Shown: piece after piece, positions 3,356 through 64,000 of the stretch | How positions within the stretch are numbered: the stretch's first letter is position 1 | How the letters are laid out: each line of letters starts with the position of its first letter | Assembly: GCF_000143415.4 (NCBI RefSeq) | Contig: NW_003314261.1 | Coordinates: 2,553,266-2,617,265, forward strand | Length of the DNA: 64,000 bases | Direction: 5' to 3' | DNA from: Selaginella moellendorffii | Lineage: Eukaryota; Plantae; Lycopodiophyta | The notes under the pieces: generated by a model | The model's input: only the letters and a program-made list of their open reading frames with translations | The model's database searches: none | Told to the model about the DNA's origin: nothing | Translations under genes and position numbers: made by a program

Positions 3356-3763
3356 CACAGCGCGTTTGTTGCTGCCGCTCGTCACGAGGCTTCATCCAAG
3401 TGAAGCTCCCTAGCTCTCTCTCACTCGTTCTGGAATCTGGATCGCTCTCGCTAGATTGTATTGTTTTTTCTTTTTCCTTGTGGCTACTGCTGCTTTGCTA
3501 CCACTGCTCCTTGCCTGGTGTGCTCAATGGATCCTGCTCCTAGATTTCAAAAGCTACATGATTTTGTCGGCAGCGATTCAAGCCCTTTCCGATTAAAACA
3601 GTGGAGAGTGTCTGAGCTGTTGTACAACAGCACAACAGTCGGAACACGACTTCGAATTCCTCAGTATTTTGCCACTCTTTGGTTTTGATGGTTGCGTGCG
3701 CGTCCTTTGCACCGCCCACGCTCAAACCCAAACAAAGAAAAAAAAACACCTTTTCTTCCTTCT

Positions 3764-3767
<4 letters not shown>

Positions 3768-3801
<34 letters not shown>
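3768..3801. repeat. (AG)n microsatellite upstream of the ERF gene
   Basis: About 17 perfect AG units. Confidence 0.95.
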
Positions 3802-3803
<2 letters not shown>

Positions 3804-4297
3804 GGAGGGGGGAGCTGGAACCTCTTCGCCAAAAACCGACCTAGTGAATAATCTTCTTAGTAAATTCCCCCCAAATGAAAGAAGAAAGTTATAGAGAGTC
3901 CTATTTCATCAGCTCTAAAACTCATGCTAGATCCCCTGTAGCAATTGCTGCGCATCTGCTCGCGCGATGGCCTGATTGACAGACAAGCGAGGCCTTTTTC
4001 TCGCAACCCACACACACATTTTTCTCGATTCCTATCGCGTTCTCCTCTATCTCGAGTGGAGTGTGCGCGATATCAATTCGAGGAGCTTATCGGCCCTGGA
4101 TCGCACGAAAGATCCGCAAGATAAGATCAATCTCTCGTTTGCTTGCTCTGCCGCCTTTGACGAAGCTTCGCGGGGGTCCAGGCGCATTTGCCCGGGCCTT
4201 CCTCGTCCCTTCCCGCGCGCTTTGAGGATATTCCCGCCACCGCTGCCCTAGGTTTTAAATTTGAAACGGGCGGACGCCACATGGACCCTGCTGTAGA

Positions 4298-42210: not shown

Positions 42211-43039
42211 TCTGATTTGTTGTTTAAGACTGGCAAGAAATTAATCCTAGGAGACGAATTGTCCAGTTGAATTCCAAATAAAACTGAAGTAAAAAGTTGC
42301 GGAGAATTTGTCATGCTTGTTCATGTAAGCATTGATTAGAGTGAAACGGCATTGCTTCTATGTGACGCTCAGCAAAATCCGACATGAATCTTTGCTCGCT
42401 TAGCTCCCAAAAAGGTGAAAACAAATTAATTAATTCATTGCTAACAAGTTTTCTTCCATCCATGGAAGCATTTCAATGGAGAAAGGTCAAGAGTATGACA
42501 AATAGATTGGAGAAGATCAGCATCATATGGTAAAGCTAGTAAACGTTTTAACAAGGATAGGCAGATTTGTGGAAACCTTCTACCCCTAACACCAATGTCG
42601 AGGATTCTCAACCCCAGTTCCCAGAGAGCAATCTTCTATAAAGGCAGTAAGTTTTTCCTGGTTATTAATCATTTGATCTTCTAATTCTTTCTTATTATTG
42701 TTAATTATTTTTCCGGCTAAGCAGCATCCAGCGTGATGATCCCGAGCTTGGTCCTTCGAAAGAAGTGGAACTCGACAGAGCTACTCATGAATTCATTGTA
42801 AAACATCAATGTACTTGCCCTCGTTCTTCTGGATCGTACTTTAATCGGGTGACTCCATTGCACACAATCTGACGCATTGACATCATCGTCCACAGTGACT
42901 GGAGATCCTCCGCTAACTAGAATCCAAGAGCTGATGATCGGCTTCCATCCTTAGTTCCATTGAAATCCTTTGTTCACCACCATCCAAGCCAATCCAGATC
43001 CCAATGGAAGTAGCTTCCAATGTCCGAGAGCTTATCAAG

Positions 43040-43271
43040 TGTTATGATCCGGCGCAAAAAGACAAAGATCTAGTTGCCCTAGACTATGCTACGCCACCTC
43101 TTGAGGTTCCTCACCACCCAGCCACCCCCGAGCTACCTCAAAAGCTCCATTGCGCCGCCGCTCCACTGTGAGCCCTAGGGTAGGTTAGTCCCCTACCCTA
43201 ACATGCCTTAATATACCCTTGAGCCTCCCTTTGACCGACATTGACCACGTAGTCAAAGTTGGCGCCTAACA
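43040..43271 (-). repeat. 3' LTR
   Basis: 232 bp; 7 substitutions versus the 5' LTR by manual count. Confidence 0.95.
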
Positions 43272-46200
43272 ATTCTTCCCCCCCAACAAAGTCCTTGTCC
43301 CAAGGACGAGTGGTTCCGGTGATCACCCTTTCTGGGGAACCCTGCTCAAGCTCCTGATCCATCGTCCACAGCCGTATACATCAAGGAGGCATTGGGCTCG
43401 TCACTCCGAGATAGTACACCTTTCAACTAGCTGACATAAAATACCGGATGAATTTTCACCCCAGCTGGCAGCCACACCCGATAAGCCGCTTTACCAATGC
43501 GCTCCAGCACTTCATATGGACCAGCATATCGATGGGAGAGTTTATCACTCTTCCCTGTCCGTAAATGCACCAAGGTGTTCTGCCGCTCACTTGACGGAAA
43601 GACCACTCACACAAAGACGAGATCACCCACCTTATATTCCCGGAATTGGCGATGCTCATTGGCAAACTTCTCCGCTCTATCTTGAGCTGCTTGCAAATTC
43701 CGTTTGCACACCACCAGAATCTCATCAAGTTCGGTGGCCAGATCAGTTGCCTCGGAATCAAGCTTATCTTGAACGTCCTTACTCAAATGCAATCCCAACT
43801 CCACCGCTGTTCGAGGATGCCTTCCAAACATGGCAAAGTAAGGACTTAGCTTGGTTCCACTGTGTTGGCTATTGTTGTAAGCAAATTGCACCAACGGAAG
43901 ATATAGATCCCACTGTCCTTGCCTTTGACCAATGCTACAACGTAGCATATCCTCCACCACTTGATTCACACGCTCAGTTTGCCCATCCGTCTGAGGATGA
44001 TCTCCACTCGAGAGTTTCAAAGTCACTTGCATAGCCTTTGCAAAGCTTTTCCAAAATCCACTGGTGAACTTTGAATCTCGATCACTAATGATGTCCTCTG
44101 GCAAACCAAAATCAGGAAAAACCTTCTCCAAGTAAACCGCAGCCAAGTCTGAGGTAGTGACAGTCTTCCGAAGAGCCAACAACCGCACATACTTCGTCAA
44201 CCGATCCACTATGACCCATACTTGCTCCTTTTGCCTCTGTGTTCGTGGCAAACAAGTGATGAAGTCCATAAAGATACTACACCAACGGCTCTGAGGAATA
44301 GGTAAAGGTTGCAAAAGTCCCCCTGGCTTCTCCCGTGGCACCTTAACCCGCTGACAAAGCTCGCATGATTTACAATACTTGAGGATATCAGCCTTCATAT
44401 TCCTCCAATAAAAGTTGCGCTTAATCAACTCATACGTCTTCTTCCCCCCAAAATGACCGGCCTCTGGACGATCATGATAGTGGAATAAAACTTGAGTAAT
44501 TAACGCATCCACCCGTGGCAAATAGACACGGCCATTGTAGTAGAGAATCCCATCCACCAATGAGAAAGGAGCTTCCATCTGGTCTCGCAAAGAGGCCACC
44601 TCAACATCCTGAGCCTGAGCATGCTCAACCAATTGCCCAAACTCGCTGACCACCTTACTCAAATGATGACAAAATCGTGTTCGTAACGTCGTCACATGAC
44701 GAACATGAGATAAAGCATCCGCCACTACATTTGATTTTCCCGAACGATGCTCAATAGGAAACTCCCCAAACTCCATGAGTTTGACCATCCAATGAGCTTG
44801 CCTAGTGTTCAACTCCTTCTGTGTGAAAAGATACACAAGGGGTTTGTGATCTGTCAACACCACGAACACTGCACCATAAAGATAGTACTGCCACATCCGC
44901 AAAGCATGAACAATAGAGAGTAACTCTTGCTCATATGTGGATTAGCGTTGCTCCGCGGAATTCAAAGTTCGACTCTCATATGCAATAGGCTGTCCCTCTT
45001 GCATGAGAACTCCTCCTAGTGCATAACCACTCGCATCGCATGTCACCTCATAAGGTTTCGATGGATCAGCAATGCGAAGCACTGGAGCCTTGATCAACAA
45101 TCGTTTCAGCGCCACAAAACTCTCCTCTTGTGGTGTCTTCCACTCGAATGGCACATTCTTGCGTAACAACCGCGTCAACGGAATAGCCACCTCTACAAAC
45201 TTATGCTGGAAACGTCGGTAGTAACTAGCCATACCAAGAAAACTGAGCAACTCAGCCACTGTAGTCGGTGTAGGCCAGTTTTCCACCACAGCCACCTTCC
45301 TTGGATCCGTCTTGACACCCTTAGATGTCACAATATGGCCTAGATATTCCACCTCCGACTTTGCAAATTCACATTTGCTCTTCTTCACATAAAGTTTGCT
45401 GTCTCGAAGTAACAAAAGAACCTTGTGCAAATGCACCCTATGCTCCTCCATATTTTTGCTAAAAAAAAGAATATCGTCCAAGAAAATCTCCACAAACTCA
45501 TGAAGATAACGCCCAAATACCTCCGTCATCAACCGAGTAAATGTGGCTAGTGCATTCGTCAAACCAAACGGCATAACAGTAAACTCAAAATGTCCGAAGC
45601 TTGTGTTGAATGCCGTCTTGGAGATAGATGCATCATCCATTGCAATCTGATGATATCCACTCCTCAGATCAATCTTGGTAAACACTCGTGCTTCACTAAG
45701 CTTGTCAAGGATATCATCCACACGTGGCATCGGCATCTTGTCCTTCACTGTCTTCTTGTTTAAAGCACGGTAGTCAATACACATCCGCATTGAACCGTCC
45801 TTCTTCTTCACAAGCAAGACCGGAGCACCAAACGGAGACTTACTTGGCTGAATAAATCCAAACTCAAGTAACTCCTTGACTTGTCGTTGAACTTCTTGCT
45901 CCTCCACATAACTTAACCGAAATGGACGCCGGTAAATTGGTCGCGTCCCCGGCTCCAATGTAATCCCATGCTTCACACCTCGTAATGGAGGCAATCCATG
46001 AGGAAGTTCAGATGGAAAAACATCAGAAAACTCGTCTAGTACATCCCGTATTGCTGCTTCACCCCCACACATGCCTTGGTCCCCCAAGTCACGAACAAAC
46101 AGCAAGTAACTCGAATGTGCTTTTCCATTACGACAAGCCCGCTTCAAAGATGTAGCAGAGAGCATAACAACTGGGGGTTGAACGCCCTCGCCAAACCACA

Positions 46201-47721
46201 CATCTTTAACACCACCATACTCCAGCGAGATACGCTTAATGCTCCACTTTATCTCTGGATCCACCTTCACCAACCATGGCATCCCAAGAATGAGATCCAC
46301 ACAATGGATATCTGCGAGATAAAAAAGTCTCCACAAGTGTGGTTTTGCCAACCAACACTTCCAGCCCCTCGATACAAGCATCGAAATGCTGAGCAGAGGT
46401 AGCTGCACCTTCCACTGTGTATGGAAGAACTCCACGTGTGTTCAGGCGATGCTCCGCAACAAACTTTGCCGAAACAAAGTTGTCATCGCTCCCACTATCC
46501 AATAAAATCTGCACTGGATCGCACGGAACACGCCCTCCAGCATTAAAGCTGATTCACGCGTATCCTCGAGCTCCATCTTGTTCCACACACAGTTGAGTTG
46601 ACGAGCAACGATCGAAAGTCTCTTCCTCCGACCAGAATGGTCGTTCTCGTCATCCTCACGCTGTAAAGCTTGCAACTTTTTAGTATCTGACTTACCGTGA
46701 GAAGATGATTGACCATTCTTCTTGTCCTGCTGCTTGTTCTTCAACTGCGGACAATCAGCCTTGTAGTGTCCAAGTTCGCCGCAATGATGACAACCCTGTC
46801 TATAATTCTTCACAAAGAACTTTTGCTTCTTGGACCCCTTTGCATCTGAAGTAGTCACCACTGACTTCAACTTGTGATACTTGTTCCCATCCTTGTGTCC
46901 ACGGCGATCATCACGACGATTCTCGATAGAAGGACTCCGCGACCGCTTGCGAGACTTGTGCTTGTCATTGTCAAGTCGACGAGCCGCATCAAAGAGCTCC
47001 TCCAAACTCTTTGTAGGATGAGAATGACGCAAGTGTTGCCGCATGCTCTCACTATATAGGCCATCAATGAAGTAGGACTTGTTCTGATCTGGATCCTTCA
47101 TTGGAACACGACTAATCAAGTGAGTAAGCTTCTCAATATAGTCCCCGAGCATCATTTTCCCTTGCTGGAAATGGCGAAGTTCTGTACGAGCATTCTCCAC
47201 ATCGTAATGAGGGGCAAAACGTAAACGGAAAGCAGCCTCAAACTCATCCATGGTAGACACTAGTGGTTTCTTATCCGCAACACGGGACTCCTCAAGCCAA
47301 TTCCACCATCGAAGACCTGCATCACGCAAAACCATCGGAATAGCCACTAAAGCCTCTGCATCTAGAGTTCCTCTAGCAGCCAAGAACTTCTTCACATTGG
47401 CTAGCCAAGCAAGACACTCATCCACACCACCATCACCGGAAAAGGTTGGAATCTTGAGTCGATCTACCAAAGAAGGCTTACTTGGAGTGCTACCCCGTCC
47501 AGCCTCGAGTGCCTCAACACGCCCACACATGGTATCCATCATGCCATGCATCTCGTCTTGCATCTCTTGCTGATTTTTATTAAGGGCTCGCAGCTCATGA
47601 ACCACATCTTGAATGGTCCAAATCTCCGCAGCTTCGTCGGCACCATCGTCAGCACCACCATCGACAATAGGATTCCAGTGTTCAGCTTGGTCGGCCATCG
47701 CAACCAATCCTCTGATACCAA

Positions 47722-47953
47722 TGTTATGATCCGGCGCAAAAAAACTAAGATCTAGTTGCCCTAAACTATGCTACGCCACCTCTTGAGGTTCCTCACCACC
47801 CAACCACCCCCGAGCTACCTCAAAAGCTCCACTGCGCCGCCGCTCCACTGTGAGCCCTAGGGTAGGTTAGTCCCCTACCCTAACATGCCTTAATATACCC
47901 TTGAGCCTCCCTTTGACCGACGTTGACCACGTAGTCAAAGCTGGCGCCTAACA
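47722..47953 (-). repeat. 5' LTR
   Basis: 232 bp, adjacent to the PBS. Confidence 0.95.
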
Positions 47954-49536
47954 TCAAGCCTGCAACTTCTCTCCACCACCACGACCGTCCATACTTCTCA
48001 GCTGCCTCGACCAGATTGCTCCTCGGGTCTACATGCCTTTCCTCTACTTCATTGCACGATTCAGCCCTTCCAACCAGCTCAAGCTATCCCTCTCCAAGAC
48101 GCTCTCCCTCTTCTACCCGCTAGCCGGCCGCTACAAGCTTCTTCCCAATCAGGCCCTCAAGATCCAGTGTTGCGACTCCGGCATCGAGTTCTTTGCCGGT
48201 CTAAACCCTAAACGCCAGCAAATCTCTAGAAGAAGAACTCGGCAGCTTCCACGAGTTTAATCCCAGCCTCGACAGCCTAGCGTCGCGCGAGGCCTTCCCA
48301 ACGCAAGAAGCCACGGAACTTCCTCTTGTCTATCAAGCTCACTCGGTTCCTGTGCCTCCAAGTAGCGACTCACCACAGCGCAGCCGATGGAGTTGCCACG
48401 GCCGATTTCGTGAAAGCCTGGGCGCTGATTTCCTCCGGCCAGGAGCATCGCGTCAATCCGCCACACTTGGAACGATCCCTGCTCCTGCAACCTGACGCAA
48501 TTCCACCGGAATCCACTCCAGCGGAGTACCAGATTGAGCCTCCGCCCTTCCCCGACCCCAGCAATGTGGAGCGTGCAATCCTCTCCTTCACGAGCAGCGG
48601 CATTCGGTCGCTGCTAAAGAGCGACACCACCGCGACTCGATTCGAAATACTGGCGGCTCACCTCTGGATCGCGATCACCCGCGCCAGAACCGAGCTCTCG
48701 CTTCTTCAACTGCATGAGGAAACGAGGCTAGGCTTCGTGGTGAATGGGAGAAAACGTTTCAATCCTCCAATTCCCGATGGCAATGCGGTCTTTCTTGCAA
48801 TCGCATCCTCCAGCGTCGAGCAACTTCTGGCAGGATCGATCGACGGCGCTGTTAATCTCATCCAAGAAGCCAAGTGCAGGATCACGCACCAACACATGCT
48901 ATCCACAGCCGCCTGGATTGCATCGAGGAAGTGCCCGCTAAAGATTTCGCTCTCCTTCAAGCCCTCGGATCTCGTGATCTCGAGCTGGCAGCGATTGGAG
49001 ATGGCTGGCGCGGATTTCGGAAGCGGCAAGCCGGTATTCGCTGGAACCATGGGAATTGTGTGGGCTGGAGTGGCCATCATTTTGCCCGAGATCGAGGGAA
49101 ACGATCGACTTGTCGTCAACACGATGCTTGAGCGCGGTCAAATGGATGTCGTTCGCAGAGATCCTGGGCTCATAATTTAGGGCAACTAAAGCATATTCGC
49201 CTTCATTGACACAGAGTCAATTCTGCTTAGATGATTAGCGAAAGATGCGACGTTGGCAACCAGCCATTTTAGATTCAACTTTGATCTTTGTTTATATATC
49301 AATAAACGTTTTACAATTCTTTTTTTACATTTCAACTCCCTCGTTTGCCTTTTCGTCCCAACTTGTTTTCGTTGCACAGTTGTTCTCGGCAGCCACCAAA
49401 AATGTTTTCCAGCCATAGACATAAGAGATGTTGATGTCCGGAGAATAAAAAAAAGAAAAGCGCAAGCAAATGAAGTTAGTAATGGTGAAAAGGAAATACG
49501 AACTAGCAAGTAAAGCTTTAGTGCTGGCATTTGCAT

Positions 49537-50070
49537 TTAAGCCGCTTGAACTCTCTTCATGACCAAGTCGTTCTCAAGGCCAGGAGCACTCCTTTTCACA
49601 CCACTCCTTCACAGCTTGTCGATCTTACTGCTGCAATTTTTGACAAATCCATGGGTGTTGCAGAACCTGACTGGTCCTTGCTTGTTTGCAGCGGAGGATC
49701 TCATTTCTAAGATGTTGGCCGTGGATCCGAAAACAGAGGTCGCTCCCTGTCACATGAGATCAAATGCTTCCATCGGCTGGTATCCAGCATCTTGTATAAA
49801 ATTGCTCCTAGCCCCCACACGTCGATGGCTGCCATGTAGAGCTCCAATCCCTGTTGTCCACCACCTCAGCTGCCATGTACTTCACTGTGCAATAGTTCTG
49901 TGATATCTCCTCGGGGTTATCTGTGGCAATGCCAAAGTTGCTGATCACCACTTTGTCGTGCACGTTTAGCTTGGAAAGAATGCTTGAGATCCTGGTGAAC
50001 CACGCCCCTCAAATGCATCTCTTTTGAGGGTCTTTACCAGCTGCTTGATGATTCTGGCTGCTTTCTCTTC
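49537..50070 (-). pseudogene. Degenerate copy of the Ser/Thr kinase at 55804-56678, with duplicated 3' flank
   Basis: Colinear with ~55804-56390, and flank ~49230-49536 resembles ~55435-55803. Many deletions and an inverted segment at ~49671-49740. Confidence 0.82.
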
Positions 50071-50139
50071 AACCATCTTCTCGCAAATATGCAATACTTA
50101 AAAGACCACGAAATAATTTACCAAGTTTGGGATAAAGCC

Positions 50140-52448
50140 TTAAGAAAGGAAGGCAATATTTCCAGCAACCACTCGAGGAAAAATGCCCGTGTGCTGTGCA
50201 AAAGGAGACTTGGACAACACCGCAAAGTCGGCAAACTTTCCTGGCGTCAGTGACCCAACCAGATCCTCCAATGCAGCTGCATACGCAGCCGAGGATGTGT
50301 ACCTGTGAATCCAAAAACAAGGACTTCATTTCAGTTTCTCATCTGTTTTCTCTTACCCCACCACTGCGTCCCATGCAGAAACCCTTTCCTCGGGAATCCA
50401 GGGATGACTCCAGCCTGAAGGTGTTCTCTCCACGGCTGCGCGGATCCCTCCAAGTGGATTCACTGCTACCACCTTGAGACAAATCATTCACGTAACGCCA
50501 AAGAAAAAGTATTTGACAGACTTACAGCAACCACGCTACCGTTTCCGAGGAGGGACCGGAGGTTATAAGATCCGCGTGAGTGCTTCTCACCAAGTTTCTT
50601 TACGGCGTAGTAAGCATCATCTAGAAGTTGCTCTGGCTGTGCAAAAATCCAGGGTTTTGCAATGGAGGCATCATGCATTCATCTGCTTACTTGCATCGAC
50701 GCAGATATCAAGAACTTCCCAAATTTGAGGTGTGCTCCAGGTGAAAGGTGTTGTGCATGCTCTACCTGCAATCCCACGAGTTAAGCGATACAAACGTAGA
50801 TTTGTTCATCGTTACTCTCAATCGATGTCCTTGACGAGGATGTTTAGAGATAGCGTCAGCGTAAATTCCAAGCACATCATCGTTTGCTGCATCGCCAATC
50901 GCATGTACTGCTACCTGAAGTTCATGATTAAGCATTGGATCAAGGATCATGGAAGTACCTGTAATTTCGACTCAAAAGCAGCACTCACGGACTCGGAAAG
51001 CCAACTCAGATCGGCCACACGGAGGCCAAAATTGTTCGGATCGTCTTCGTAGTGCTGCGCCAGAAACTTTAATACCTCAGAAAAGCTACTTAATATTTAC
51101 GTGACACCTGGTGAAAGAGAGCTGTTCCCGAGCCCAGCGATCCATCGGCAAAAGCTTTGACCCACCAATGTGAACCCAGTCGCTTATATGCCGTCCTCGC
51201 TCTTTTATCAGAGCCTGAAGAACAAATTCAAGTATCGTATAGTAAAATGCGACTCGCGGCCAAGTCTCGAGTGGGAAGAAAAGTGCAGACCTCACAGTCA
51301 TATTCCCGAGAGAGTCCATCCATGTGTATACCTCTAGAGGAAGAATTTAGACGAGGAACATGATGTTTAAAATTGAATTACCTTCAAAATCGTTCTTGAT
51401 TGATCCACCAGGAAAGTATGATCCGATATCAACTACTGAGGTGACGCCTTTAGAGACAGCATAATGGCTTGCTCTTGCCAGAGCTTCTCTACGTTGCTCC
51501 AATGACGGTTTAGGAACACAAGAAGTTAACAATATCATAGCAGCATCAACGAGTAAACCAGTTGGAACTACAAAGAAGGATGTTAGAACCAACTTCTCTA
51601 TAATTCAGATAGGAGAAAAAAACTGACCACCATCTGCATCTCTTACAATGCTCCCACCAGTTGGATCTTCTTTAACGCTCTTCAAATCACAAATATCCAT
51701 GGCAACTTTATTTGCAAGGCCCATGTGACCGTCCATCCTGCTCTGTGTGATACTATGAACGTCAGGTTTTTAGAACCTCAAAACTACAACAAAAACTCAC
51801 CGGATTGTTTTCTGTGACACTATCAATCCAGGATGAATCTGGCCACTCACCTCCCCAGTGTTCGTTGCTCCATCCGAATCCTTGAAGCCACTCATTTGGC
51901 TCGAGCCCTTCAAAAGAAGCGATGAATATTATACACTCATGAAGAAACAAATTCAAGAGCACCATGAGCAGCATGTTGAACTTTTTGTGTGAACTCTAGA
52001 CGTGTGTGTACATCATGAAAATCCAATCTTACTAGCTGCAGGTAAGACGTTAATTTCCCTTGTTGTTTAAACTTAACATACCTGCAGGCCTCCAGGAATA
52101 AAGTGAACATGAGAATCAATGAAACCAGGCACCACAAACTGCCCCTCGAGATCACGGAATTCGGTATCAGAACCGGCAACCTCGTACAAGCATGAAATTT
52201 TGTGAAAAATATCTGTAACAAAGAAAACAAACGCTTACCTTGACAAGTGAGAGAGAACCCACGCGAAGGATTCTTCCCCGTCTCACAGCCATCGATTCTG
52301 CCCATGGAACATCCTTGTCTGCAGTCCAGATACTGCAGTTCGTGATGACAAAATCAGCCGGTGCTCCTGGATTTCGTTTCCAAGATAGAAGAGCTGCTAC
52401 GGCTAGGGACAGCAGCACTATCCCAAGTGAAGTTGCTAACGAACCCAT
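50140..52448 (-). pseudogene. Amidohydrolase-3 family (LAF3-like) gene, probably disabled
   Basis: N-terminal TM, ADFVITNCSIWT, VPGFIDSHVH, VHAIGDAAND, VEHAQHL, GSLTPGKFADF. The GG(V)KAFADGSLG motif is frameshifted near 51160 and the expected GSDWP motif is absent. Confidence 0.7.
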
Positions 52449-52577
52449 CACGACTGTCTAGGGCCAGTTAGCTTTAACATTTAAAACACATGCAAAGGAG
52501 ACCCGATTCGATAAAATGTACTCGAAAGGATACCTGAGAAGCGCCTTGTTTCAAAATTGATTTACAAAAGCCCATCG

Positions 52578-54523
52578 TCACTGAAGCTTACATCCCAGAA
52601 ATTTCTCCATGACACTGTCCAAAGCCTGAGACAAAAGCACCGTTTAACAGCAGCGAAATAGCTTCAGAATCTTTACCTTTGATGCGAACGCTTCCTTCCT
52701 ATCGAGGAGCGCAGTCATTGCGACACTGGAGTCGTCCAAAACACTGTAAAAGCGCTTGTAGAACTCTGCTCTGTTAAAACCAAAGCCATAACCACGTAAA
52801 ATCAACAGCATCCTAAAACTTGCTTACTGTGATGCTTCAGAAGCAATCGAGTCCATCTCTTCGAACTGTTTTGTCAAAAGTTCTGCAGCAACAGGACTGA
52901 GAGCATGCAATACGAGTGCTTCTAGTGAACGAGGAAATGTAGTCTGCAAATGCACAACTTGGTAACGACAAACATAGCATACAGTGCCTGCACTTACCAC
53001 CATGGTAAGAAAGATTCGACGAAGGCTTCGAGGGCTCGTATTTAGAAACACACTTGCGATAGGATCGTCCTCACAATTGCCATTGTTCACTGCGACCGCT
53101 ACGCAGGATAGTATGACGTGAAGTTGTTTTGTTTCTAGTGGACTCAAGCTGTTCACGGTAAGATCTTCTGCTCCTTGCACGTCATCAAGATCACTTTCTA
53201 CATCCACGTGAGGATTCCATCCGAGCATCGATCTCTGTAGAACAATATAAGTAAATTGCATTGGAAATTGTTGCTTGTTGACCTTTTCGGCGTCCAAAAG
53301 ACTGGAAAACAAAAGAAGCTGTTAAAAAGCCAAGAGCAACATTTGCTAACCTCACTAAAATCCTCCGCAAATAATATGCATCCATGGGCGTGTCGAATGC
53401 GCAAGATTGTTTAGACGCCCACCAAAAGTTTACGGCAATGGTTAGAGCAGCACTGTCCACTTGGTGGAACCAACCCTCTGGTATAAAAACTGCACTGCCA
53501 GCATCGACTACGAGAACCCGACTGTCTTTTAATGCATCTCTAAAGCGTGGAAATTTTTGGTAGTCTGGTTCTACAAAGTTCACCTCGCTGCATAGAAACA
53601 AGAATAAAAGAAGTGTATCTTTTTCTATAAAAACAAATACCTATGGTTCGAAGCTTCTCCATACAGTGGCTTGGGGTACAGATATGGCGCCGCATCAGGA
53701 GGCCACAGGGTAACTGCAACAAATACAACACTGAAAAATGCCACGCATGAAAAAGCTCTACCTTCTTCTGACCCGTCACGACTCCAAGAACATTGTGGTA
53801 TGGATCATAATGTATGCTTGATCGAGAAGACGTCGAACTCATCCAAAGGTTGATGTTTGAGACCGCATCCTCGTCCAGGAACTCTGGCTGAGCATGGTAA
53901 GTGTCACAAAAAAATAAAAAAGTAGGCGAAGAATATATGATACCAGGGATATCTCGGATTCCAGAGAAGCGAGCGGAGGTTTCTCGGTTGAGTCTTTCAC
54001 GCGTATAGGAACCTGCAGTGATATCCTTAATATCGGCAACACAGGCAACAAGAGTAAATCTTAACCTGTGCCAGATAAAAGTGATCGTTGTGCTCTCCAG
54101 GTGACAAAACCATGTCTAGATATTCTCTAAAAGGCAACGCTACCTAGGAACCAGTTTAAGAACAAAAGAAAAGAAGGAATCAAAGAAAAAATACAAACTC
54201 TTTCATGGCTTCTAATATCACCGAAGAACGTAGAGCCATCGCTGCTCACCATTGCTTGCACTAGAGGTTCTCCTGCGATTTCCTTGAGAAGCGGTCTAAT
54301 CCCTGCTCTAGGACACGAAAATTCTCACCTTAAGATGCTCGACACCGCCAGTGGCTGGATTCCACCGCTCAAATGCGGGCCATTGCCGCAGAATCCCTGG
54401 AAAAACCTGCCAGAAGCTCTAGCAATCGAAACAAATCGACGCGCCTTGGCTTACCTCGGGAATGTTTCGAGCTTCCATCTCCCGGAATTCGTCCCTCGAC
54501 GGTGGGCGCCAATTTTCCTCCAT
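52578..54523 (-). CDS. JmjC/Cupin_8 2-oxoglutarate dioxygenase (JMJ31-like), multi-exon
   Basis: VFPGILRQWPAFERWNP, NINLWM...SSIHYDPYHNVLGVVTGQKKV (HxD), AGSAVFIPEGWFHQVDS...IAVNFWW. Confidence 0.85.
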
Positions 54524-54579
54524 AGCCAAACGTTCAAATGAAGAACCCTAGCTAGGACGTAAGTGGATTTTGAGCTAGT

Positions 54580-55400
54580 GTATGCGGCAATGCCAGCGCC
54601 TGTCCGATCGCTATGGCGAATGCGGCAGCGTCGGCGAGGCGCGCGAGATCTTCGATGGCATGGACGATCACAGCAAGAACAGGTTCTCCTGCATCGCGAT
54701 GCTCACCGTCTACGCGCACAACGGCAGGCCTTTGGACTCCAAGAATCTCTTCGATCGCATCCCCGGTGGCAGAGATTCCGTGGCGTGGAGTTGCCTCATC
54801 GGCGCATTTGTTCAAGATCGGGGATCTTGAGCACGCAATGCACGTCTTCGATCCCCTCCCGCGCTGGACCGTCGTCACATCCACGGCATTCTCGTGGCGC
54901 TGGCGAAGCGTGGCAAGGCCGAGGACGCCAGAGCGATGTTCTTGGCGATGCCGGAGAGAGATTTCGTCGCGTGGAACGCGATAATCACCGCATATGCCCG
55001 GAATGGGAATCTCCAGGTAGCGCTGGCGATGTTCTTCCGGATGCCGGCTAGGAACTTCATCTCCTAGAACGCGATCTTCGATGGTTGGGATGAAGCACTG
55101 GCCAAGAAGGTCTTCGATTCGATGCCCCAGCGAGAGGTGGTGTCATGAGCGGGCGTTTGGAGGAAGCGCGAGCTGCCGGCCTTGAACATCGTCTGGTGGA
55201 ACCTGATGATCCAGGCGTTCGCGAACAATCTCCTGGTTGACGAAGCCAAGGAGCGCTTCAATCGAGCGAGCACGACTTCGTGTCATGCACGGCCTACGCG
55301 CAGACCAGCCAGATCTTCCTCGCGAGAGCAGCCGTCGATTGAATTCCCCAGCGCCAGTCGTATCCCCAAGCATGGATCACGCGGACTCTTCCACCACTTT
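54580..55400 (+). pseudogene. PLS PPR pseudogene fragment
   Basis: YGECGSVGEAREIFDGM, AMPERDFVAWNAIITAYARNG and AKKVFDSMPQREVVS* in shifting frames with stops. Confidence 0.8.
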
Positions 55401-55803
55401 GAGAAGTTCCCGAATGATCTCAAGATATGCTTGGGTTGTTAGATTAACAGTGATCAATAGCCATTCTCGATTTAACTCCACTTTTGATCCTTGTTTATAT
55501 ATGGATAGACTTTTTTCAATTCTTTCTTGAGGGGAGAAACATTCAACTTCCCTTGTTTCTTAAAGAAGAGCGGCATAGCTTTGTGTGTAACATCTATCTC
55601 GTTTGCATCTACCTCGGCATTTGCTTGGATCTCGTTTTTGTTCCACGATTGTTCTCGACAGCCACCAAAAAGGTATTTCCAGACAGAGACACGAGAGATG
55701 TCGATGATGTCCGGAGGATACAAAAGCGAACCTGAAGTTAGGAACTGCGACTAGGAGAAAGAGGAAATGGCAAGTGTGCTTACCGGACTGACTGCTGGCA
55801 CTT

Positions 55804-56678
55804 TTAAGCCGCTCGAACTTTCTTCACGACCAAGTCCTTGTCGAGGCCAGGAGCACTCCTTTTCGCACCACAGGGCCTCCTCCACGTCCTGTAGATCTTA
55901 CTGCTGCTGCTTCTGCAAAGCTTGACAATCCATGGGTGTTGTAGAACCTGATCGACTGTCAGCCTTTGTTTCGGATCCACAGCCAGCATCTTGGCAAGGA
56001 GATCCTCCGCTATAAACGAGAAAGGACCAACCGGGGATGCCCCCTGTCGCACGCGATCAAATGCTTCACTCGGCTGATATCCTCCCTTTCCCAGCATCTC
56101 GTATAAAATCGCTCCAAGTCCCCACACGTCGATAGCTGCTGTGTAGAAGCTCCCATCCTTGTTCTCTGCCACCTCGGGTGCCATGTACTTCCCCGTGCCA
56201 CAGTACTGCGACATCTCCTCAGGGTCGTCTGTGGCCATACCAAAGTCACTAATCACCACTTTGTCGCGCGCGTCTAGCTTGAAAAGTATGTTGCCCGGCT
56301 TGAGATCCCGGTGAACTATGCCTCTCGAATGCATCTCCTTGAGGGTCTCTGCCAGCTGCTTGATAATCTGAGCTGCTTCTTCTTCGCTCATCTGCCCGGA
56401 AGCGCGCAAGCGATCAGCAAGACTAGATCCACATAGTTCCATAATAATACTCCCAAAACATTGTCCTCCATCTCTCTCCTTGATGAAATCTCTAAAGGAG
56501 ACAACTCCAGGGCAGCCCCGGAGCTTGGCCATGATCCCAACTTCTCTCTCTCGCTCCCTGATCGAAATGCCTTGGCTGCATATGAGTTGTGACCGTCCAG
56601 ATTGTGGAGCACGAATACATGCCCCTGGCCGCCACACCCCAGCGTCCTACCTTTCTTGAAACCTCACTGCCCCAACAT
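55804..56678 (-). pseudogene. CAMK/PPCK-like Ser/Thr kinase, catalytic core intact but N-lobe disrupted
   Basis: HRDLKPGN, DFG, CGT..YMAPE and DVWGLG are in one frame. The Gly loop LGCGGQGHV and YAAK are in another frame, preceded by ATG at 56678 and an in-frame TGA. Confidence 0.75.
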
Positions 56679-56799
56679 ATGAATACTGAGAAGCTCTTTG
56701 CAATCTTCCTCCCTAAACTCACTTACCACTGCCATCGCTCTTCTCTCTCTCACAAGTTTAATAAAAAAAACCCTAGCTTCTTCTAACGAATTTAATTGA

Positions 56800-59600
56800 T
56801 ACTGTATATTAATATTAACAGCCGTACACTAATATTAACATAATGGCATTTTGATAACTGTTAAATTGGTTTTAATTTGGATTGTTTACTTTTGATATAA
56901 ATTAGGGTTTTTAAGCTGATTAATATGCACATTTTGTATTTTATTTCCATATTCCATAAATTCATATTGGTGGAGAGGAGAATGCTTAGATTTGGGATTT
57001 TAGTTTAAATCTAACTTTTGAATCATCTATATCTCACTTTCTTTATAACTTTTCTAACTTATTCTCTTTTATTTTTTCTTTTTCATTTATCTTCATGGCA
57101 GAGTATCCTCCTTTAACTTTGGAGCAATAGTTAGTGCAATTATATTATATGGTTGCAATTGAATAATTAAACCTAGTTGATAGTAATATTCACAACATAT
57201 GATAACTCCTTTTGTTTTTTTTGCCAATACTTGCATCTGGCCAAAGTTCTTCCATGGGAATCTTGGGATAATATGTACCATTGATTTGATCACTTTACAA
57301 TGATTGCTATATATCATTTTTGGGATGATATTTAATATTTATTTGAGTTTCTCACGTGTCTCTAAGGGCTAATGCTATAGTGGTATAATAGTTTGAGTGC
57401 AGCCACTTATATAGATTAAAGTATTCTCCTGAAAGTCTTCAAACATGTATTTGGACATGCTAATGATTGTGATAATGCCTTTTATTGATTGCATTGTTTT
57501 TATCAAAGTTATTTGAATCAGTCATGCAATGTGGTATTCATTTTTGGAGCTTTTTGCTTCATGCAAAGCCAAATATATCAAAGTGAATTGAGCCTTTTAC
57601 TTCGTGAGGAGCCAAATATATCATTTAGACATGCCGATGCTTATAATGATGCCTTCTATTGATTGGATTATTGTAAACCACAAATTTTTCCTTTTCAATT
57701 TACTAGATTACTTTGTTTATCTGACCACCACTGCCTTGGCCTTAGTTAAGTTCCTTTATTAAGGTTCCTGTCTATAATACCAACTCCTACTTGGTCTTAC
57801 TTAGTCTTAATTATTTATTGCATGAGCAACAAAGTGTTAGCTATCTATCCATAAGTTCTCAAATTCTCTCCCAATCCCTTTTCCTAAGTTAAATTACACT
57901 TAAAGTTTAATTACACTCCTTACAAGCATAAGCAGCCAAACATACTAAGCCTCTAGATTTTTAACATCCCTTGATACACAAAACTTGATCATAGGACCTT
58001 CTAAATCCTAAACCTTAAATGCATCATTTGCTTTGGGATCTCAAGGGTAAACACCATGGCCTAATGGCCTAGTATAGGTACCCTTACTCCCCCACTTCCA
58101 TCCAAAAGGGAAGGCCCAAGCTTTTAGAAAAGAGTGAGGACCAATTTACCATATGGTATTTATATGGGGCACCACTCCATATGAGCTAGAAGCACTGCAA
58201 TTGGTTTGCTTTCCAGGAGTGAGTCTACATTGACGACATTTTGATCTATATAGCAAGACGCTAAAGGAGTATACCAAACACTTGATGAAGGTGTTTGAGT
58301 TGCCAGAAGTGGGGGTTGCTCTTGAGCACTTCCTTGGATGGCCTCTTTGACACCACCTAAGTTCATGCTTATTTTCACCTAAAGCACTTAACCCTCAGTC
58401 TCAACTTTAAGTCAATTCGGAAGCACCTGTAGCACATGTGATCATGAGATGAGATTTAGTATATTATCACCATGGATCCTTGAAACCTTGGGGGATAAAT
58501 GGGGATAAAATAGCCACTAAAGGCTCTCTCATCAAGCAATTGCCCCTTTTTCAATTGGTTTAAGGGGAGAGAGATAAAGTGTGTTACATGTGGTATTAGA
58601 GCAAATGGCACATGTATGATTAATGGGTACTTAAAAATATAATATACCCTTAAAAAAAGTATATTCCTACTATATTTTGGAACTCCCCCCCGCCCTCCCA
58701 TCCTCCCCTAAGGAGATGATCGCTTTGGGCTTTCACCCCACAACCTATATTAGTATTTGAACTTGATTTTGAACTCAATCTTGGACACAATTTCAAACCC
58801 GACCTCAGACTCGATCTTAAACTCGATCTCAAATTCAGTTTTAGACCCAATCTTGGATCTCAGACTTAGTCTCGAACTTGGTCTTGGACTCGGTCTTGAA
58901 CTTGGTATCGGACTCAATCTCAGACTCGGTCTTAAACTCGATTTTGGTCAGTCTTCGACTTGATCTTAGATTCGGTCTTATTTAATAAACTCTTTATCAT
59001 TCCGATTATAGTTTCAAGGATCTTTTAAGTGTACGACACCTCGGAGAGTTGGTTCCTTACAATTATCATTTCTAAATATATTAGAGTGAATTAAGTTGAG
59101 AATGTTATGGCTAACATTTTGTCAATATCTTATAAGACTTGTGTATGCACTTGCTCTAGCACTTTTGATAATACTTTTTGCTTGGCATAACATTATGAGA
59201 CATTGCCTCTTCCACTCGTTACACATTCTTCAGCCATAACATTTAATAGGTTGATACTCCAGAAATTATACATATGTAATGGTTAAAACACTATGTATAA
59301 AGGAATCAAGAACCATTAGTACCACGTACAAATCCACTAGTGCCTCTTTTTAATATTCCTCCTGATGTTCTTCTAAATCCCAACCCATCAACCAAAGAAA
59401 CTTAACTACTTTCCATCCTTTTGAGAGGAGGGAATGATGTGAGGTCCAAATATACATACTAATATTAACAATTATATATTATAGTAGCCATTGGATTAGT
59501 TTCAATCCAAATCACTCGTATATATAAATTAGGGGTTTTGGGCTAATTAATATGCATATTTCTATATTCCATTTTTATATTCTATAGTTGTATTTAAATA
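56800..59600 (+). mobile_element. Old degenerate LTR-retroelement remnant
   Basis: Diverged direct repeat (~56820-56960 vs ~59455-59590, TAATATTAACA...TATAAATTAGGG...TAATATGCA); PBS-like TGGTATAATAG at 57381; purine tract GAGAGGAGGGAA then TG at ~59423-59439; AT-rich, no intact ORF. Confidence 0.45.
58757..58980. repeat. Degenerate 6/12-bp tandem repeat (ACTCGGTCTTGG-like)
   Basis: ...actcgatcttaa actcgatctcaa...acttggtcttgg actcggtcttga...; source of the spurious low-complexity ORFs here. Confidence 0.75.
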
Positions 59601-60759
59601 TATAAAAAATTATATACAACAATATATTATTCTTTGCATCATTATTATAAATTATTGATGATGGTATGATTATGAGTGAAGAGTTATATTGGATTGCTTC
59701 AACATTTTCCATGATTTTTGCAATGAAGTTAAAGCTATAACTCAAAATATTCAAATTATTAGGAACTCATCATCAAAATAATTTGCTGCGCATTGCATGC
59801 AACAACACTTGGTTTTAGTAGTGTTATTCTTATTTATTAATCTAACTGATGAAATGGAACTTTATATTATGAACATGTTTATAATTTATAAACATAAGAA
59901 TAATATTTTTGAATATCAACCATTAAATGGTAGAATAAAGTAAAATATACTAGAAAATGTTTAGAAAACTTTATAAATTTTCTACCACAAGAAAATTCTA
60001 CAAGATTAATCTAAATGAGTAACAACCATTAGATGGTAAAATATATCCTAGAATATTCAAGATATTCTAGGTATATCCACTACCATCCCAAACCAAAAAG
60101 TGGTAATGACAAAAACAAGACAAAAGAAAATAAGAAAAATCATTTATAAATAAAAATATTTTGTGTTTGAAACTAACCTTAAGTTAACATAAGGACCTAA
60201 TCTAGGTGTGGATTGTAGATGCTTATTTGAACCAGTGGTCACAAATATACTCTAATGAATAATAAGAGACTTCCCATTTTTTTGACTATTTAAACATATT
60301 TTTCCCCATTAAAAATTCACACCTGTTACAATGGAGCCTAGAATTGGTTGTGAGAACACTAAATTGCTCTTCTCACTACATTTGAGAACCTGATAATTGG
60401 GTAAATTCTTGAAACACCATATAAACTCAAGAGCTTCCTTGTATTCCAGAACTCTGAAGCTAAAAAATACATTCTCCCAACACCTTCAAAAATCATTCCT
60501 TCAAAAAACCAAAACTAGAATAATAGGTTACTTTTATCTCTAGTGCTGAGATCCTCCACAAACTATGTCCCTAGAATTGCCTTTGCATGCCTTCCAAGGG
60601 CAACGTCTTATCATTGAACGATTGAACACCACCTCCAAAACCATTGCCTATTGTCGCATTACATGCCTCCATGGCTTTTCGTGTAAATACAATATATATT
60701 ATGGAAACTTTCAATTGTCATCAATTGTAATTTGTTAGCGAAGATCAATCCTTCTGCAA

Positions 60760-61710
60760 TAAACAAACAAAAAATATTTCACCATGGAGTGGACAAAACC
60801 TGACACTTAGCCGAGCAGGAGGTATAAGGCCGATGGAACTCTGCTTGGAGTCCAGCAGCAGCAGTGGCGACCATGTCTGGCTTGAGATCCTGTAGACACA
60901 CAGCTCGAGGAGACCGAGGACTACCACAGGCACCCGCACAAATAAACCGCTCCTGGGACGATCTCCCGAGGAAACAGCCCTGGATCACTCAGTGGCATTG
61001 CCCAACGTCTCGTCCAATAGCATAAATGCTGGGGTTGTCATCACTCCTCCACTGCCACCTTTTCACGTTTGCATGCATGGGAGGAGGATTCACCAAAGAC
61101 AACCGACAGGGGAAATATGTGAAGTAGGCAAACTGGCATGTCACTGACCATGAATCCCAGCGGCAGGCTCTTCCATCGCGCAGCCCCGATCGAGGAAGTT
61201 AACAAACTTGAGTGAGTACTCCTCCCCTGCCGAGCTCCTCCTGGCAATTAAAACAATGTGGCTTCCATCGCTGCAAAACCCAAGCTTGGGAAACGATGCC
61301 AGTATCTGATTTTGGCCAGCTCCAATGCCTCCAGCTCTCCCGCTACTGCCGCACAACAGCGACGCGAACAGCAATCGTAAACGAGGACTCGAGCCATAGA
61401 CCACCCAAAAGTTTGAGTCTAGGAACGCCTAGAATATGGCAATGAAAGCACTCGATCTCACAACCCAGTCCTTTGGTGGAAGTCGAGTCCAGTGGCGAGT
61501 GAGGGGATTGGTGACGATCAGCTTGTCTCGCCTGGTCTCCACTAGGAGCAAGCCCGCTGAAGTTGCCGCCCGCACGTGGAAGAGCTCCTCGGGAGGTAGC
61601 TAGAGATCTTGTTGCCATAAAAGTTGAGGGAGATCACGGCTGGTGCCAGGATTTGAAGGCGAGCTTGGCGGCCTGGAGAGGGAAGTGATCGAGAAGCTTG
61701 AGCAGCATGG
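60760..61710 (-). pseudogene. Possible F-box gene remnant
   Basis: MLLKLLDHFPLQAAKLAFKSW (F-box-like), ..WKSLP and ELCVYRISSQTWS in different frames; weak. Confidence 0.3.
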
Positions 61711-62140
61711 TATGTACATTCCTCAAGAGGCCCTTAGGGACTATTACAAAAACCGGGCCACTTTGGCCCCTAGTGCGGCTCTAGTGTTATAGCTACGGCG
61801 GGCCAGCGATCAGGACCTGCTGCAACCGTCCTCGTTAGAGTGAGTTGATGTCCCCTCTCCTTGCGCTCGCCAAATCCTATCTGGGGGGTGCCACCTCCAC
61901 TTCGGTCCCTGTGGAGGCAGCCACTGGCTCAGCCATGTTCTGGCTGGATCTGGTTTCGCTTGCCCTTCCAACTGGGCCTGCCGCGATCCAATGGCAGCTA
62001 GGGAGAGTTACCACCATGTAGAAATGATGGCTCATATCCGAGCTAGTGCTTGTTCCGTGCTTCCCAGATCACTTGGACGCCAATGGACCACCAAATCACC
62101 CATCGCTCTAACCCAACTCACTATGTTTGCTACTCCTTAA

Positions 62141-63064
62141 CATGGTTGGTCCCGATCGTTCCGAATGCCAACCGGCCGACTGCCCGACCGTAGTTATCTA
62201 TCGACGGGCTGTGAAAATGCCGAACGGCCGAACGGTTCACAAAATTTTTTTGAAAAAAAAAAAAACATTTTTAGTAAAACCACATTAATAAAAGTAGGAA
62301 AACCAAAGCATTAAACCAAACCAAACCAAACCAAACCAAAGCATTAGACTAAACTAAACCAACTACTACTCATTTTCTTCAACATCTTCGGCAAGTCCCT
62401 CGACATCTCTAGCATCTTCCTCAACAATCACATCTTCATTTGGAAGATCTTCTTTGGCTAAATCTTCTATACTAAGAGATTCAAGCCTAGATTACATCTC
62501 TACATTTGAAAGGGCATTTGCTATTTGCTCCACAAACATTCGGTGAGCTTGGTTCTGAACATGAAGAGGAACATTTGAAGCACTACATGCTTAAATATCA
62601 TGCCCAAAAACTTTAGCAAGATGCGCCTTGATGCATTTCGGCAGACCGCCATACATTTTACCACAATAATTACATTTCCAATGCTCAGCTCCTTTGCCGG
62701 AAGCATAAGGAGTGAGCTTGGTAACATGGGACCATGCCCAATCGGGTGCCATCGCTCAATTGTGCCAGAATCGCTATGAATCTCTACAATCAAATCTCTG
62801 GAATCACTGAATTTCCATTTTAGGGCAAAAACTTCAAGTGTTGCGGACTGGGCGATTTGATTTGCGAGGCCTCAGTGCTGCTCCACGCTCAATCGAAAAC
62901 AGAGGCAGGTATGCACGCAGCTCCTATGCCCTCCTCGCCGCAGCAGCATCAGAAATCTAGCGCGATCACCATTTTTTTTGCCGAACGGAATCATCGAACG
63001 GACCTGTCCGACCGCGTTCGGCGGCGGTCGGGGTTTCGGCCGAACGCGGTCGGGACCAACCATG
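62141..63064 (-). mobile_element. Non-autonomous hAT (Ds-like) DNA transposon, 924 bp
   Basis: 15-bp TIRs CATGGTTGGTCCCGA / TCGGGACCAACCATG; 8-bp TSD CTCCTTAA / CTCCCTAA; subterminal CCGA-rich motifs; remnant BED finger WSHVTK...WKCNYCGK...KAHL...I*AC fused to an acidic tail. Confidence 0.9.
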
Positions 63065-63600
63065 CTCCCTAACCCGAGTACCCCAGCCATGCCCTCCCCA
63101 GCACGCGATCCTTTGCCATGCAGCTCCAGTACTCGGGCCTCACACATTCAAACTACTGTAGAGCTCTTGCTTCGAAGTCTTGAGTGACCCCTAGCTCTCT
63201 TGTCGCTCCCAAAATCTGTTTCCATGTTTCTTTGGCCACTTTGCAATCCCACAGGACATGAGTCATGCCGCATTCCTTCCATTTATGGGCATCCTGATTG
63301 TAAAGTGTTGCTTGTAAATCCACGTCCACTTGGATCCCATATCGTTCTCCTGGTTCCAGCCACCAAAATCCAATCGCTTGAGCTGGAGATGGAGTGGGAG
63401 ATTCGCCCAGATGGATGCATTGGAGAGCTGCAATGGAAAGAACATCCCGGAAGAATCTAGGATCGAAATCGACGAATTACCTTTCAGCATTGTCAATGCC
63501 GTCTGCCGCTCGTGCGCTTCATTTCCCGCCACAGCAAACTCTTTATTGAGCCCTAAAGAGAGTTTGAATTTTAGGGTTCTATGCAAGTTTCCCTTGGAGA

Positions 63601-64000
63601 ATGCAGGCTGCCGTGAAGCTCGAGCCATGGGAGAGAGTGCCGTGGTCGACCGTCAAATCCGTGGTGCTGCGCCTCCAATCCATGATCTACCGCGCCGCCG
63701 TGGCCAACGACACCGCCAAGGTACACGCATTCCAGTCGCGGCTGCTGGAAAACGCTCACGCGCGCCTCCTGGCCGTGCGGCGGGTCACCGAGTCGAATCA
63801 GGGCGAGGCGTCGCTGGGCGTGAACGCGCTCATCACCAGCGAGGCCCGAATCGCGCTCGCCAGGACGCTGCGCATCACTGACAAGGGCCTGCCCTTTTGC
63901 GTCACGCGGCGCCGCCGGCTGGGGCGATGCTTGCAGGACGTTGTCCGCGATCGCGCCAAGCAGATGCTCGTCAAGCTCGCGCTGGAGCCGGAGTGGGAGG
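63601..64000 (+). CDS. Group II intron-type reverse transcriptase/maturase (chloroplast-like lineage, RVT_N/RoaA-like), partial
   Basis: Open from ATG 63601 to the window end: MQAAVKLEPWERVPWSTVKSVVLRLQSMIYRAA...VHAFQSRLL...ARLLAVRRVTESNQG...GVN...DRAKQMLVKLALEPEWE. Confidence 0.85.
   Translation, partial: MQAAVKLEPWERVPWSTVKSVVLRLQSMIYRAAVANDTAKVHAFQSRLLENAHARLLAVRRVTESNQGEASLGVNALITSEARIALARTLRITDKGLPFCVTRRRRLGRCLQDVVRDRAKQMLVKLALEPEWE

Follow-up and report, generated by a model that had tools for sequence, protein, structure and literature searches.

What does a gene of group II intron descent do when it stands on its own in plant DNA? The question is raised by an open reading frame (ORF) at the very end of a 64,000-nt stretch of the Selaginella moellendorffii genome (RefSeq assembly GCF_000143415.4, contig NW_003314261.1, positions 2,553,266 to 2,617,265 of the forward strand; hereafter the window, numbered from its first nucleotide). 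A preliminary description, made from the letters of the window alone, had read this frame as the start of a nuclear gene for a group II intron reverse transcriptase (RT)-maturase of the chloroplast-like or cyanobacterial type. That the frame descends from a group II intron-encoded protein is, in our judgement, very likely. The explanation that best accounts for the data as a whole, and the one we favour as probable, is an unannotated, transcribed nuclear gene for a free-standing maturase descendant that is RT-dead.

The frame starts with the ATG at 63601 on the forward strand and, as first described, is open for 133 codons to the window edge at 64000. On the evidence of Pfam and our reading of the ORF, 63601–64000 encodes RT0 (equivalent to RVT_N), an eroded RT1 and the beginning of RT2. 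The DNA past the edge was taken from GL377565.1:2599069-2619815, reversed (segment L002; window position = 66551 minus L002 position). L002 2551-20747 matches window 64000-45804 at 100% identity over 18 kb, and L002 1-2550 supplies the next 2550 bases. Neither a stop codon nor a frameshift was met just past the edge, a possibility the preliminary description had raised against itself. The ORF continues stop-free for 493 codons (L002 2950..1469 on its minus strand, or 63601-65082 in window-extended coordinates). None of 20000 composition shuffles of the 493-codon ORF was stop-free, and the other five frames hold 3-29 stops. The GC content of third codon positions (GC3) is 0.74 for the whole ORF, 0.88 at the 5' end dropping to 0.56 at the 3' end, against 0.43 for second positions (GC2). 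This strong three-base periodicity indicates that the sequence evolved as coding DNA; a 5'-to-3' GC3 gradient is typical of nuclear genes. For the first 133 codons GC3 is 0.88 and GC2 0.46, so the GC-rich third positions reported earlier are real, but their supposed likeness to neighbouring genes has to be qualified, since the neighbouring long ORFs span GC3 values of 0.46-0.81 and only the top of that range comes close.

No gene is called at the locus in the NCBI annotation of GCA_000143415.2, and the NCBI gene table is empty here, in keeping with the absence of the frame from the ORF list supplied with the window. An exhaustive HMMER search of a collection of ~15 billion proteins with the 133-aa piece returned 1076 relatives, the best of them 42-48% identical and none above 48%. 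We therefore judge that the product of the gene itself is absent from the collection.

The domain content is that of a group II intron maturase. Pfam recognizes RVT_N in the window part (E = 3.3e-19, with 69 bits where the cut-off is 28) and at residues 10-89 of the full ORF (E = 3.8e-18), followed by GIIM, which corresponds to the thumb or domain X, at residues 337-410 (E = 6.4e-13). RVT_1 scored 28.7 bits on the full ORF, slightly below its cut-off of 29.6. The same scan gave no match to Intron_maturas2 at E ≤ 1 and none to a MatK family. Pfam found no HNH domain either, and the alignment stops before the HNH block of the relatives. Among solved structures, the sole sequence match of the 133-aa piece was the T.el4h group II intron maturase-RT of Thermosynechococcus (6me0_C). 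T.el4h was also the best match of the full ORF (E = 1.8e-35, residues 9-414), followed by the 7uim RT (6e-14), GsI-IIC (1.7e-8) and LtrA (1.4e-7); class C RTs and LtrA thus score far below T.el4h in this structure-sequence search. The RVT_N/RT0-RT2 signatures of chloroplast-like RTs that had been picked out by eye are upheld by these results. An AlphaFold2 model built from 66 sequences has a pLDDT of 82 and a pTM of 0.80. It is confident for residues 10-455 and weak at 68-73, in two eroded loops (102-106 and 212-221) and beyond residue 457. Its top Foldseek matches are 8fli_B (E = 9e-18) and 6me0_C. According to the model, the RT fingers-palm fold is present in the protein.

The polymerase active site, by comparison with relatives, is eroded throughout. 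Where relatives have RRVxIPKPGKxExRPLGIP in RT1, the Selaginella protein has an 8-residue gap and CVTRRRRLGRCLQD, so that the erosion of this segment, already suspected from the window, is real. In RT3, LDADIxKCFD is replaced by LVAHSCYIFQ, with the catalytic Asp changed to His. In RT4, relatives read GTPQGGVISPLLAN and the Selaginella protein RAGDFGVITPLLAN, the GTPQG loop having become RAGDF. The RT5 motif RYADDFV is RYCEQFV; the YADD box for which the preliminary description had proposed to look downstream is therefore YCEQ. All three catalytic aspartates are replaced, which excludes reverse transcription. In a separate audit, 124 alignment columns served as reference, each with a conservation of 90% or more across 104 relatives. 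The Selaginella protein retains the family residue in 81 of them (65%), the lowest value of the 105 sequences compared (median 97.5%). About half of the 43 lost columns sit in RT1, RT3, RT4 and RT5. By contrast, 17 of 21 conserved columns are kept in RT0 and 9 of 13 in the thumb, RT2 is almost intact, RT6 and RT7 are retained, and the thumb blocks W..YF..C and RAWVFRR are still found in the alignment. Judged from its residues, the protein is RT-dead and cannot be a reverse transcriptase; it has nevertheless retained the fold and the thumb.

Where did such a protein come from? The best of the 706 matches to the full ORF are 31-38% identical over ~90% of its length, and the best ones all carry RVT_N, RVT_1 and GIIM, with or without HNH. 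Those with names, from Gormaniella, Bracteacoccus and Jenufa, are encoded in introns of chlorophyte organelles. Three others have a plastid context: P0001 precedes atpB exon 2, which is followed by atpE, cemA, psaM, ycf12 and psbK; P0179 follows rpoA, rps9, rpl12, clpP and petB exon 1; and P0200 is within atpB, on a plastid contig of 152 kb (L085) that also carries psbV, petF, tatC and ycf66. Among prokaryotes (185,579 species genomes), identity to the query is 29-36% for the 79 best loci, of which ~65 are cyanobacterial. By its domain set and nearest relatives, the protein is assigned to the chloroplast-like/cyanobacterial lineage, as opposed to the mitochondrial-like one of LtrA, MatR and the nMATs. 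RVT_N together with GIIM, T.el4h as best structure, and plastid and cyanobacterial intron ORFs as nearest relatives all agree with the class proposed at the outset. A contig labelled as part of a Labilibaculum metagenome-assembled genome (JAQBBZ010000167.1, L005; 3.3 kb) holds an ORF almost identical to P0200 (branch 0.06-0.08), and it probably comes from a plastid and was wrongly binned with a Bacteroidota genome.

In a 105-row tree the Selaginella protein groups with a plastid-type set of 28 rows with a Shimodaira–Hasegawa-like approximate likelihood ratio test (SH-aLRT) value of 100. Its terminal branch is 2.64, 10 times the median of 0.26, and estimates of this branch lie at about 1.8-2.6 substitutions per site. 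However, joining the Selaginella protein to the cyanobacterial clade was not rejected by the approximately unbiased (AU) test (44 rows, LG+G4; p 0.62), and we have therefore withdrawn the claim of a plastid donor despite the SH-aLRT value of 100. Candidate donors are an ancestral plastid, a cyanobacterium, an alga and a mitochondrial intron of the chloroplast-like class.

Compared with the chloroplast-like group II RT-maturases as a whole (T.el4h, 6me0/8fli; the algal atpB and petB ORFs; the cyanobacterial ORFs), the protein has the same order of RVT_N, RT fold and GIIM. In contrast to them, the Selaginella gene is nuclear, is not housed in a group II intron and is followed by predicted spliceosomal introns; its product lacks the catalytic Asp, RT1, the RT4 loop and the D/HNH domain, and sits on a very long branch. 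The uncultured algal plastid atpB intron ORF P0001 (L003 622-2310), the best match of the N-terminal piece (42% identity), is instructive. Here, too, RT1 is eroded, YADD has become YADN and the GTPQG loop is lost. P0001 differs from the Selaginella protein in being still intron-borne in the plastid, and it keeps 82% of the family-conserved columns compared with 65%. It is a case of independent polymerase decay while still intron-borne, and hence RT decay with retention of the maturase occurs within the chloroplast-like lineage.

Land plants have other nuclear maturases. The nMATs carry an Intron_maturas2-type domain X and N-terminal presequences. The Selaginella protein, compared with them by description only, has RVT_N and GIIM, plastid and cyanobacterial relatives and no presequence. 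Like nMAT1-4 and their Selaginella and Physcomitrium paralogues, it goes back to a group II intron ORF and is now nuclear and free-standing. The nMATs serve as splicing cofactors of organellar introns, several with degenerate RT motifs (PMC3927076), and derive from mitochondrial-type ORFs (PMC3927076, PMC10012718). The gene could in principle be one of the seven nuclear maturase loci that Guo and Mower (2013) reportedly listed for Selaginella, of nMAT type and descended from a mitochondrial paralogue; the review that counts them traces land-plant nuclear maturases to mitochondrial paralogues, places five of the seven, four with nMAT1/2 and one, nMat6, with nMAT3/4, while its text assigns no position to the other two (PMC3927076). 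Yet the protein has RVT_N and GIIM and nothing for Intron_maturas2 at E ≤ 1, LtrA reaches E = 1e-7 where T.el4h reaches 1.8e-35, the nearest relatives are plastid and cyanobacterial ORFs, NCBI has no gene model here, and later surveys name only nMAT1/2-like Selaginella paralogues (PMC10012718). A literature search pairing Selaginella moellendorffii with RVT_N found nothing. We regard identity with one of these seven loci as quite unlikely, and placement in an nMAT clade, which the preliminary description had named as a refutation, agrees with neither the domain set nor the relatives.

The locus is transcribed, and the earlier concern that it might have no transcript does not hold: many RNA runs contain it, with contigs at 100% identity. 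At least 11 RNA runs, drawn from at least five studies, contain 0.58-0.65 of the words sampled from 63400-64000, a fraction that corresponds to the portion from 63601 on. Two RNA assemblies (X1 and X3, from two studies) were aligned to 61000-64000. The X1 contig (1843 nt, plus strand) has its 5' end at 63595 and extends 1437 nt past the edge; the X3 contig (1576 nt, plus strand) starts at 63588 and extends 1163 nt past it. Both stop at their 5' ends without extra letters and show 0 differences from the DNA over 406-413 nt. RNA depth is 0 across 62818-63524. The transcript start is thus located 6-13 nt 5' of the ATG, a distance that may be slightly understated because assemblies may lose a few 5' bases.

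These ends define the N-terminus. An in-frame TGA at 63565..63567 on the plus strand, read from the sequence 12 codons 5' of the ATG, closes the frame and rules out an in-frame extension of the N-terminus. The preliminary description had considered an upstream exon that uses the TTTTAG at 63574; the transcripts of the two assemblies examined begin at 63588 and 63595, and in neither is such an exon joined at that site. The alignment of RT0 starts at residue 6-10, matching the extreme N-terminus of the bacterial and plastid relatives, and its position leaves no room for a presequence. The remark that no clear transit peptide precedes the frame is therefore borne out by both the RT0 alignment and the transcript ends, and for lack of a presequence and an upstream exon organelle import is unsupported.

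Is the gene really part of the nuclear genome? The GC content climbs from 0.47 to 0.65-0.70 near 63600, a sharp jump exactly at the ORF start, and the RNA contigs stop at the same boundary. S. moellendorffii mitochondrial DNA is itself very GC-rich. Such a pattern might be produced by an assembly artefact, a contaminant, or a nuclear insert of plastid or mitochondrial DNA (NUPT or NUMT) with the RNA coming from the organelle copy. However, an independent sample from 2020 yielded a 925-nt contig that covers 62748-63672, and thus the junction with host DNA, with 0 mismatches, so the junction is not an assembly join and the chimera feared in the preliminary description can be set aside. Moreover, the gene sits 2.6 Mb inside the 6.95-Mb scaffold GL377565.1 and is flanked on either side by plant DNA, the RNA contigs break off at the boundary rather than running on into organelle sequence, and the downstream exons are separated by predicted introns of the nuclear GT..AG type. 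Selaginella organelle transcripts are heavily C-to-U edited, and given this the absence of RNA-DNA differences argues against an organelle source of the RNA. We consider an artefact or insert of this kind extremely improbable.

No group II intron RNA accompanies the ORF. Searches of window 56000-64000 and L002 1-4000 against Rfam, with E-values up to 1-5 admitted, gave no match to a group II intron family, and the 600 nt upstream, which are transposon debris, carry no intron domains I-III. We rejected an intact mobile intron because Rfam finds no domains I-VI on either side of the ORF. With no group II intron RNA on either side, the ORF is free-standing. The search for flanking intron RNA that had been proposed was thus negative, and the view of a free-standing, domesticated maturase-like protein is supported by this result together with the nuclear location and the transcripts.

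The 3' end of the gene has a different character. Three GT..AG introns are predicted on the plus strand, again in window-extended coordinates: intron 1 (65031-65082; 52 nt), just before the stop of the 493-codon frame, intron 2 (65192-65243; 52 nt) and intron 3 (65295-65370; 76 nt). Their GC content is 0.37-0.42. Removal of all three joins the pieces in frame and gives a single frame of 1722 nt that encodes 573 aa and ends at 65502. In this prediction, maturase residue 477 would be joined to three exons of a degenerate copy of SDHAF2/Sdh5, the succinate dehydrogenase flavinylation factor. The resemblance, spread over predicted exons 2-4, is seen in the first added exon, which matches Pfam Sdh5 with E = 0.0017 (18.6 bits, under the cut-off of 27) and 0.0074 and has yeast SDHAF2 (2lm4) as its sole PDB match (E = 0.085). 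In the Atlas, 100 of 100 named matches were Sdh5 (score 0.82). Pfam gave no match for predicted exons 3 and 4. Unlike SDHAF2 itself, the Selaginella piece stays below the Pfam cut-off, has RRIVQ, which aligns to RGILE of yeast Sdh5, in place of RGxxE, is C-terminal and lacks SDHAF2's own N-terminal part. The SDHAF2-like tail is probably a record of how a transferred ORF captured a host 3' end.

Does selection maintain the protein, or is it an expressed relic? Under the latter account, an organelle or foreign intron ORF landed beside or in an SDHAF2 paralogue, is read from a fortuitous promoter in transposon debris and is now drifting, its frame open only because it is young or lucky. Several observations fit this account and weigh against a maintained, functional gene. 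The extreme terminal branch and the lowest retention of conserved residues among the 105 sequences have the look of relaxed constraint. No orthologue of more than 38% identity was found in other plants among the ~15 billion proteins searched, and the gene is unannotated. It has neither an N-terminal presequence nor, in the two RNA assemblies, an upstream exon, and so no sign of targeting. Repeat debris surrounds it, and the host gene piece to which it is fused is degenerate, with a sub-threshold Sdh5 match and no RGxxE motif. Even the fusion is ambiguous, as the 1843- and 1576-nt RNA contigs fit the spliced and unspliced forms alike.

Other observations are hard to reconcile with drift. A frame of 493 codons on a branch of ~1.8-2.6 substitutions per site could not have stayed open neutrally, as the shuffles illustrate (0 of 20000 stop-free). 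The losses are not scattered but concentrated in the polymerase site, whereas RT0, the scaffold and the thumb are retained. The three-base periodicity persists (GC3 0.74-0.88 against GC2 0.43), the fold is confidently predicted, and the gene is expressed in many independent RNA studies. The points for function are accordingly an open frame despite the extreme branch, losses aimed at the polymerase site, codon periodicity and broad expression. On balance we think it fairly likely that the protein is maintained by selection as an RNA-binding protein, and rather unlikely that it is a drifting relic.

If the protein is maintained, what might it do? The long first exon encodes a free-standing descendant of a chloroplast-like/cyanobacterial group II intron-encoded protein in which the RT0 extension, the fingers-palm scaffold and the thumb (domain X) have been kept and the DNA-binding/HNH part has been lost. 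The isoelectric point is 10.4 for the maturase part and 9.95 for the predicted 573-aa form. Such a basic RNA-binding maturase body (pI ~10) would be expected to bind structured RNA. Its likeliest clients would be organellar group II introns, and it may be a domesticated cofactor of splicing, comparable to MatK and the nMATs. By this analogy we tentatively propose a role as an organellar group II intron splicing factor, which is possible but stops short of being probable.

MatK, the plastid trnK-intron maturase, provides a precedent for a maturase kept after its polymerase is lost: like the Selaginella protein it is RT-dead, and it serves several introns in trans. MatK belongs to the mitochondrial-like lineage. 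In contrast to the Selaginella protein, which the MatK and Intron_maturas2 families do not match, MatK is plastid-encoded and lacks the greater part of the RT domain. In S. kraussiana and S. lepidophylla the plastome has no matK (PMC6590440), and a nuclear substitute for plastid matK in some Selaginella is conceivable. A more specific proposal holds that a plastid/cyanobacterial-lineage maturase was domesticated in the lycophyte nucleus independently of the mitochondrial-type nMATs and works either as a trans-acting plastid splicing factor or outside the organelles; in this specific form we consider it unlikely. As a trans-acting plastid splicing factor, the protein would explain the loss of matK from some Selaginella plastomes. 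Alternatively, and starting from the lack of a presequence, it may work on nuclear or cytosolic RNA outside the organelles. Prp8 is an earlier eukaryotic recruitment of a group II intron protein, and the extra-organellar option would make the Selaginella gene a second.

Whichever role applies, the gene bears on how maturases are domesticated. The reviews cited above trace every land-plant nuclear maturase to a mitochondrial-type ORF, and an expressed chloroplast-like one would amount to an independent domestication. The outcome would be the same as for MatK and the nMATs, with the polymerase lost and the RNA-binding body kept, and the gene would allow a natural experiment on which regions of the protein maturase function requires. 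The gene is a candidate for the factor that lets some Selaginella species dispense with plastid matK. Its lack of a transit peptide and its SDHAF2-derived tail make it instructive for how an ORF transferred from an organelle or a foreign source gains nuclear expression signals. If it is a drifting relic, it is merely a curiosity.

The 5' flank holds one candidate signal. A telo-box-like motif, TTAGGGTT, lies at 63571..63578 on the plus strand, ~10-24 nt 5' of the transcript ends, and is a candidate core-promoter element. The preliminary description had pointed to such a motif immediately upstream of the frame, and its presence is confirmed. TTAGGGTT occurs at 11 sites in the window where 1.5 are expected by chance, and none of 100 shuffles reaches 11, which makes it a real motif class in the genome and not a chance match. 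The sites lie at 787, 868, 1933, 7137, 26613, 26637, 32648, 36575, 48204, 56902 and 63571; nine of the 11 are on the minus strand, and the one at 56902 is found just past the 5' end of a kinase gene. Across the window they may be promoter marks.

On the 5' side the gene is bordered by repeat debris (62414-63120), in which the words of DNA run X25 reach a depth of 370-4000. It includes an ORF on the minus strand at 62594..62752 for the BED zinc finger of a repeated hAT-like element (Pfam zf-BED, E = 5e-5). The segment is probably a fragment of a high-copy transposon of hAT type. An RNA contig from another copy of the repeat (11 mismatches) matches 62512-62746. A zf-RVT motif read by eye at 63156-63329 was discarded as unsupported, since a Pfam scan of the minus-strand ORFs 63156-63329 and 63266-63628 gave no match. 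Further upstream, the GC-rich segment 61404-61706 is covered only piecemeal by RNA and DNA contigs, with no link to the maturase transcript. In one RNA contig, 61522-61671 is replaced by 225 other letters, and loose contig ends occur at 61476, 61522, 61671 and 61703. It seems to be either a repeat that is transcribed or a variant copy.

A second scaffold carries a copy of the neighbouring part of the window. GL377573.1:1680781-1701716 (L001) matches window 41032-56795 at 92-95% identity, and the duplicated 16-kb block carries kinase, Cupin_8/amidohydrolase and transferase genes. The two scaffolds are collinear up to window 56795, beyond which the other scaffold has pentatricopeptide repeat (PPR) and ankyrin genes and not the 56.8-64 kb stretch. 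The maturase gene lies neither in L001 nor in the next 10 kb (L086), and not within 20 kb of the block copy on GL377573.1. The block reflects a segmental duplication, or else the second scaffold is a divergent haplotype. The kinase gene of the window (55804-56637, minus strand) contains an ORF at 55807-56532, and its gene models differ in length (209-311 aa). It belongs to a Selaginella-specific cluster with at least 11 near-identical PEPKR2/CDPK-like products on two scaffolds.

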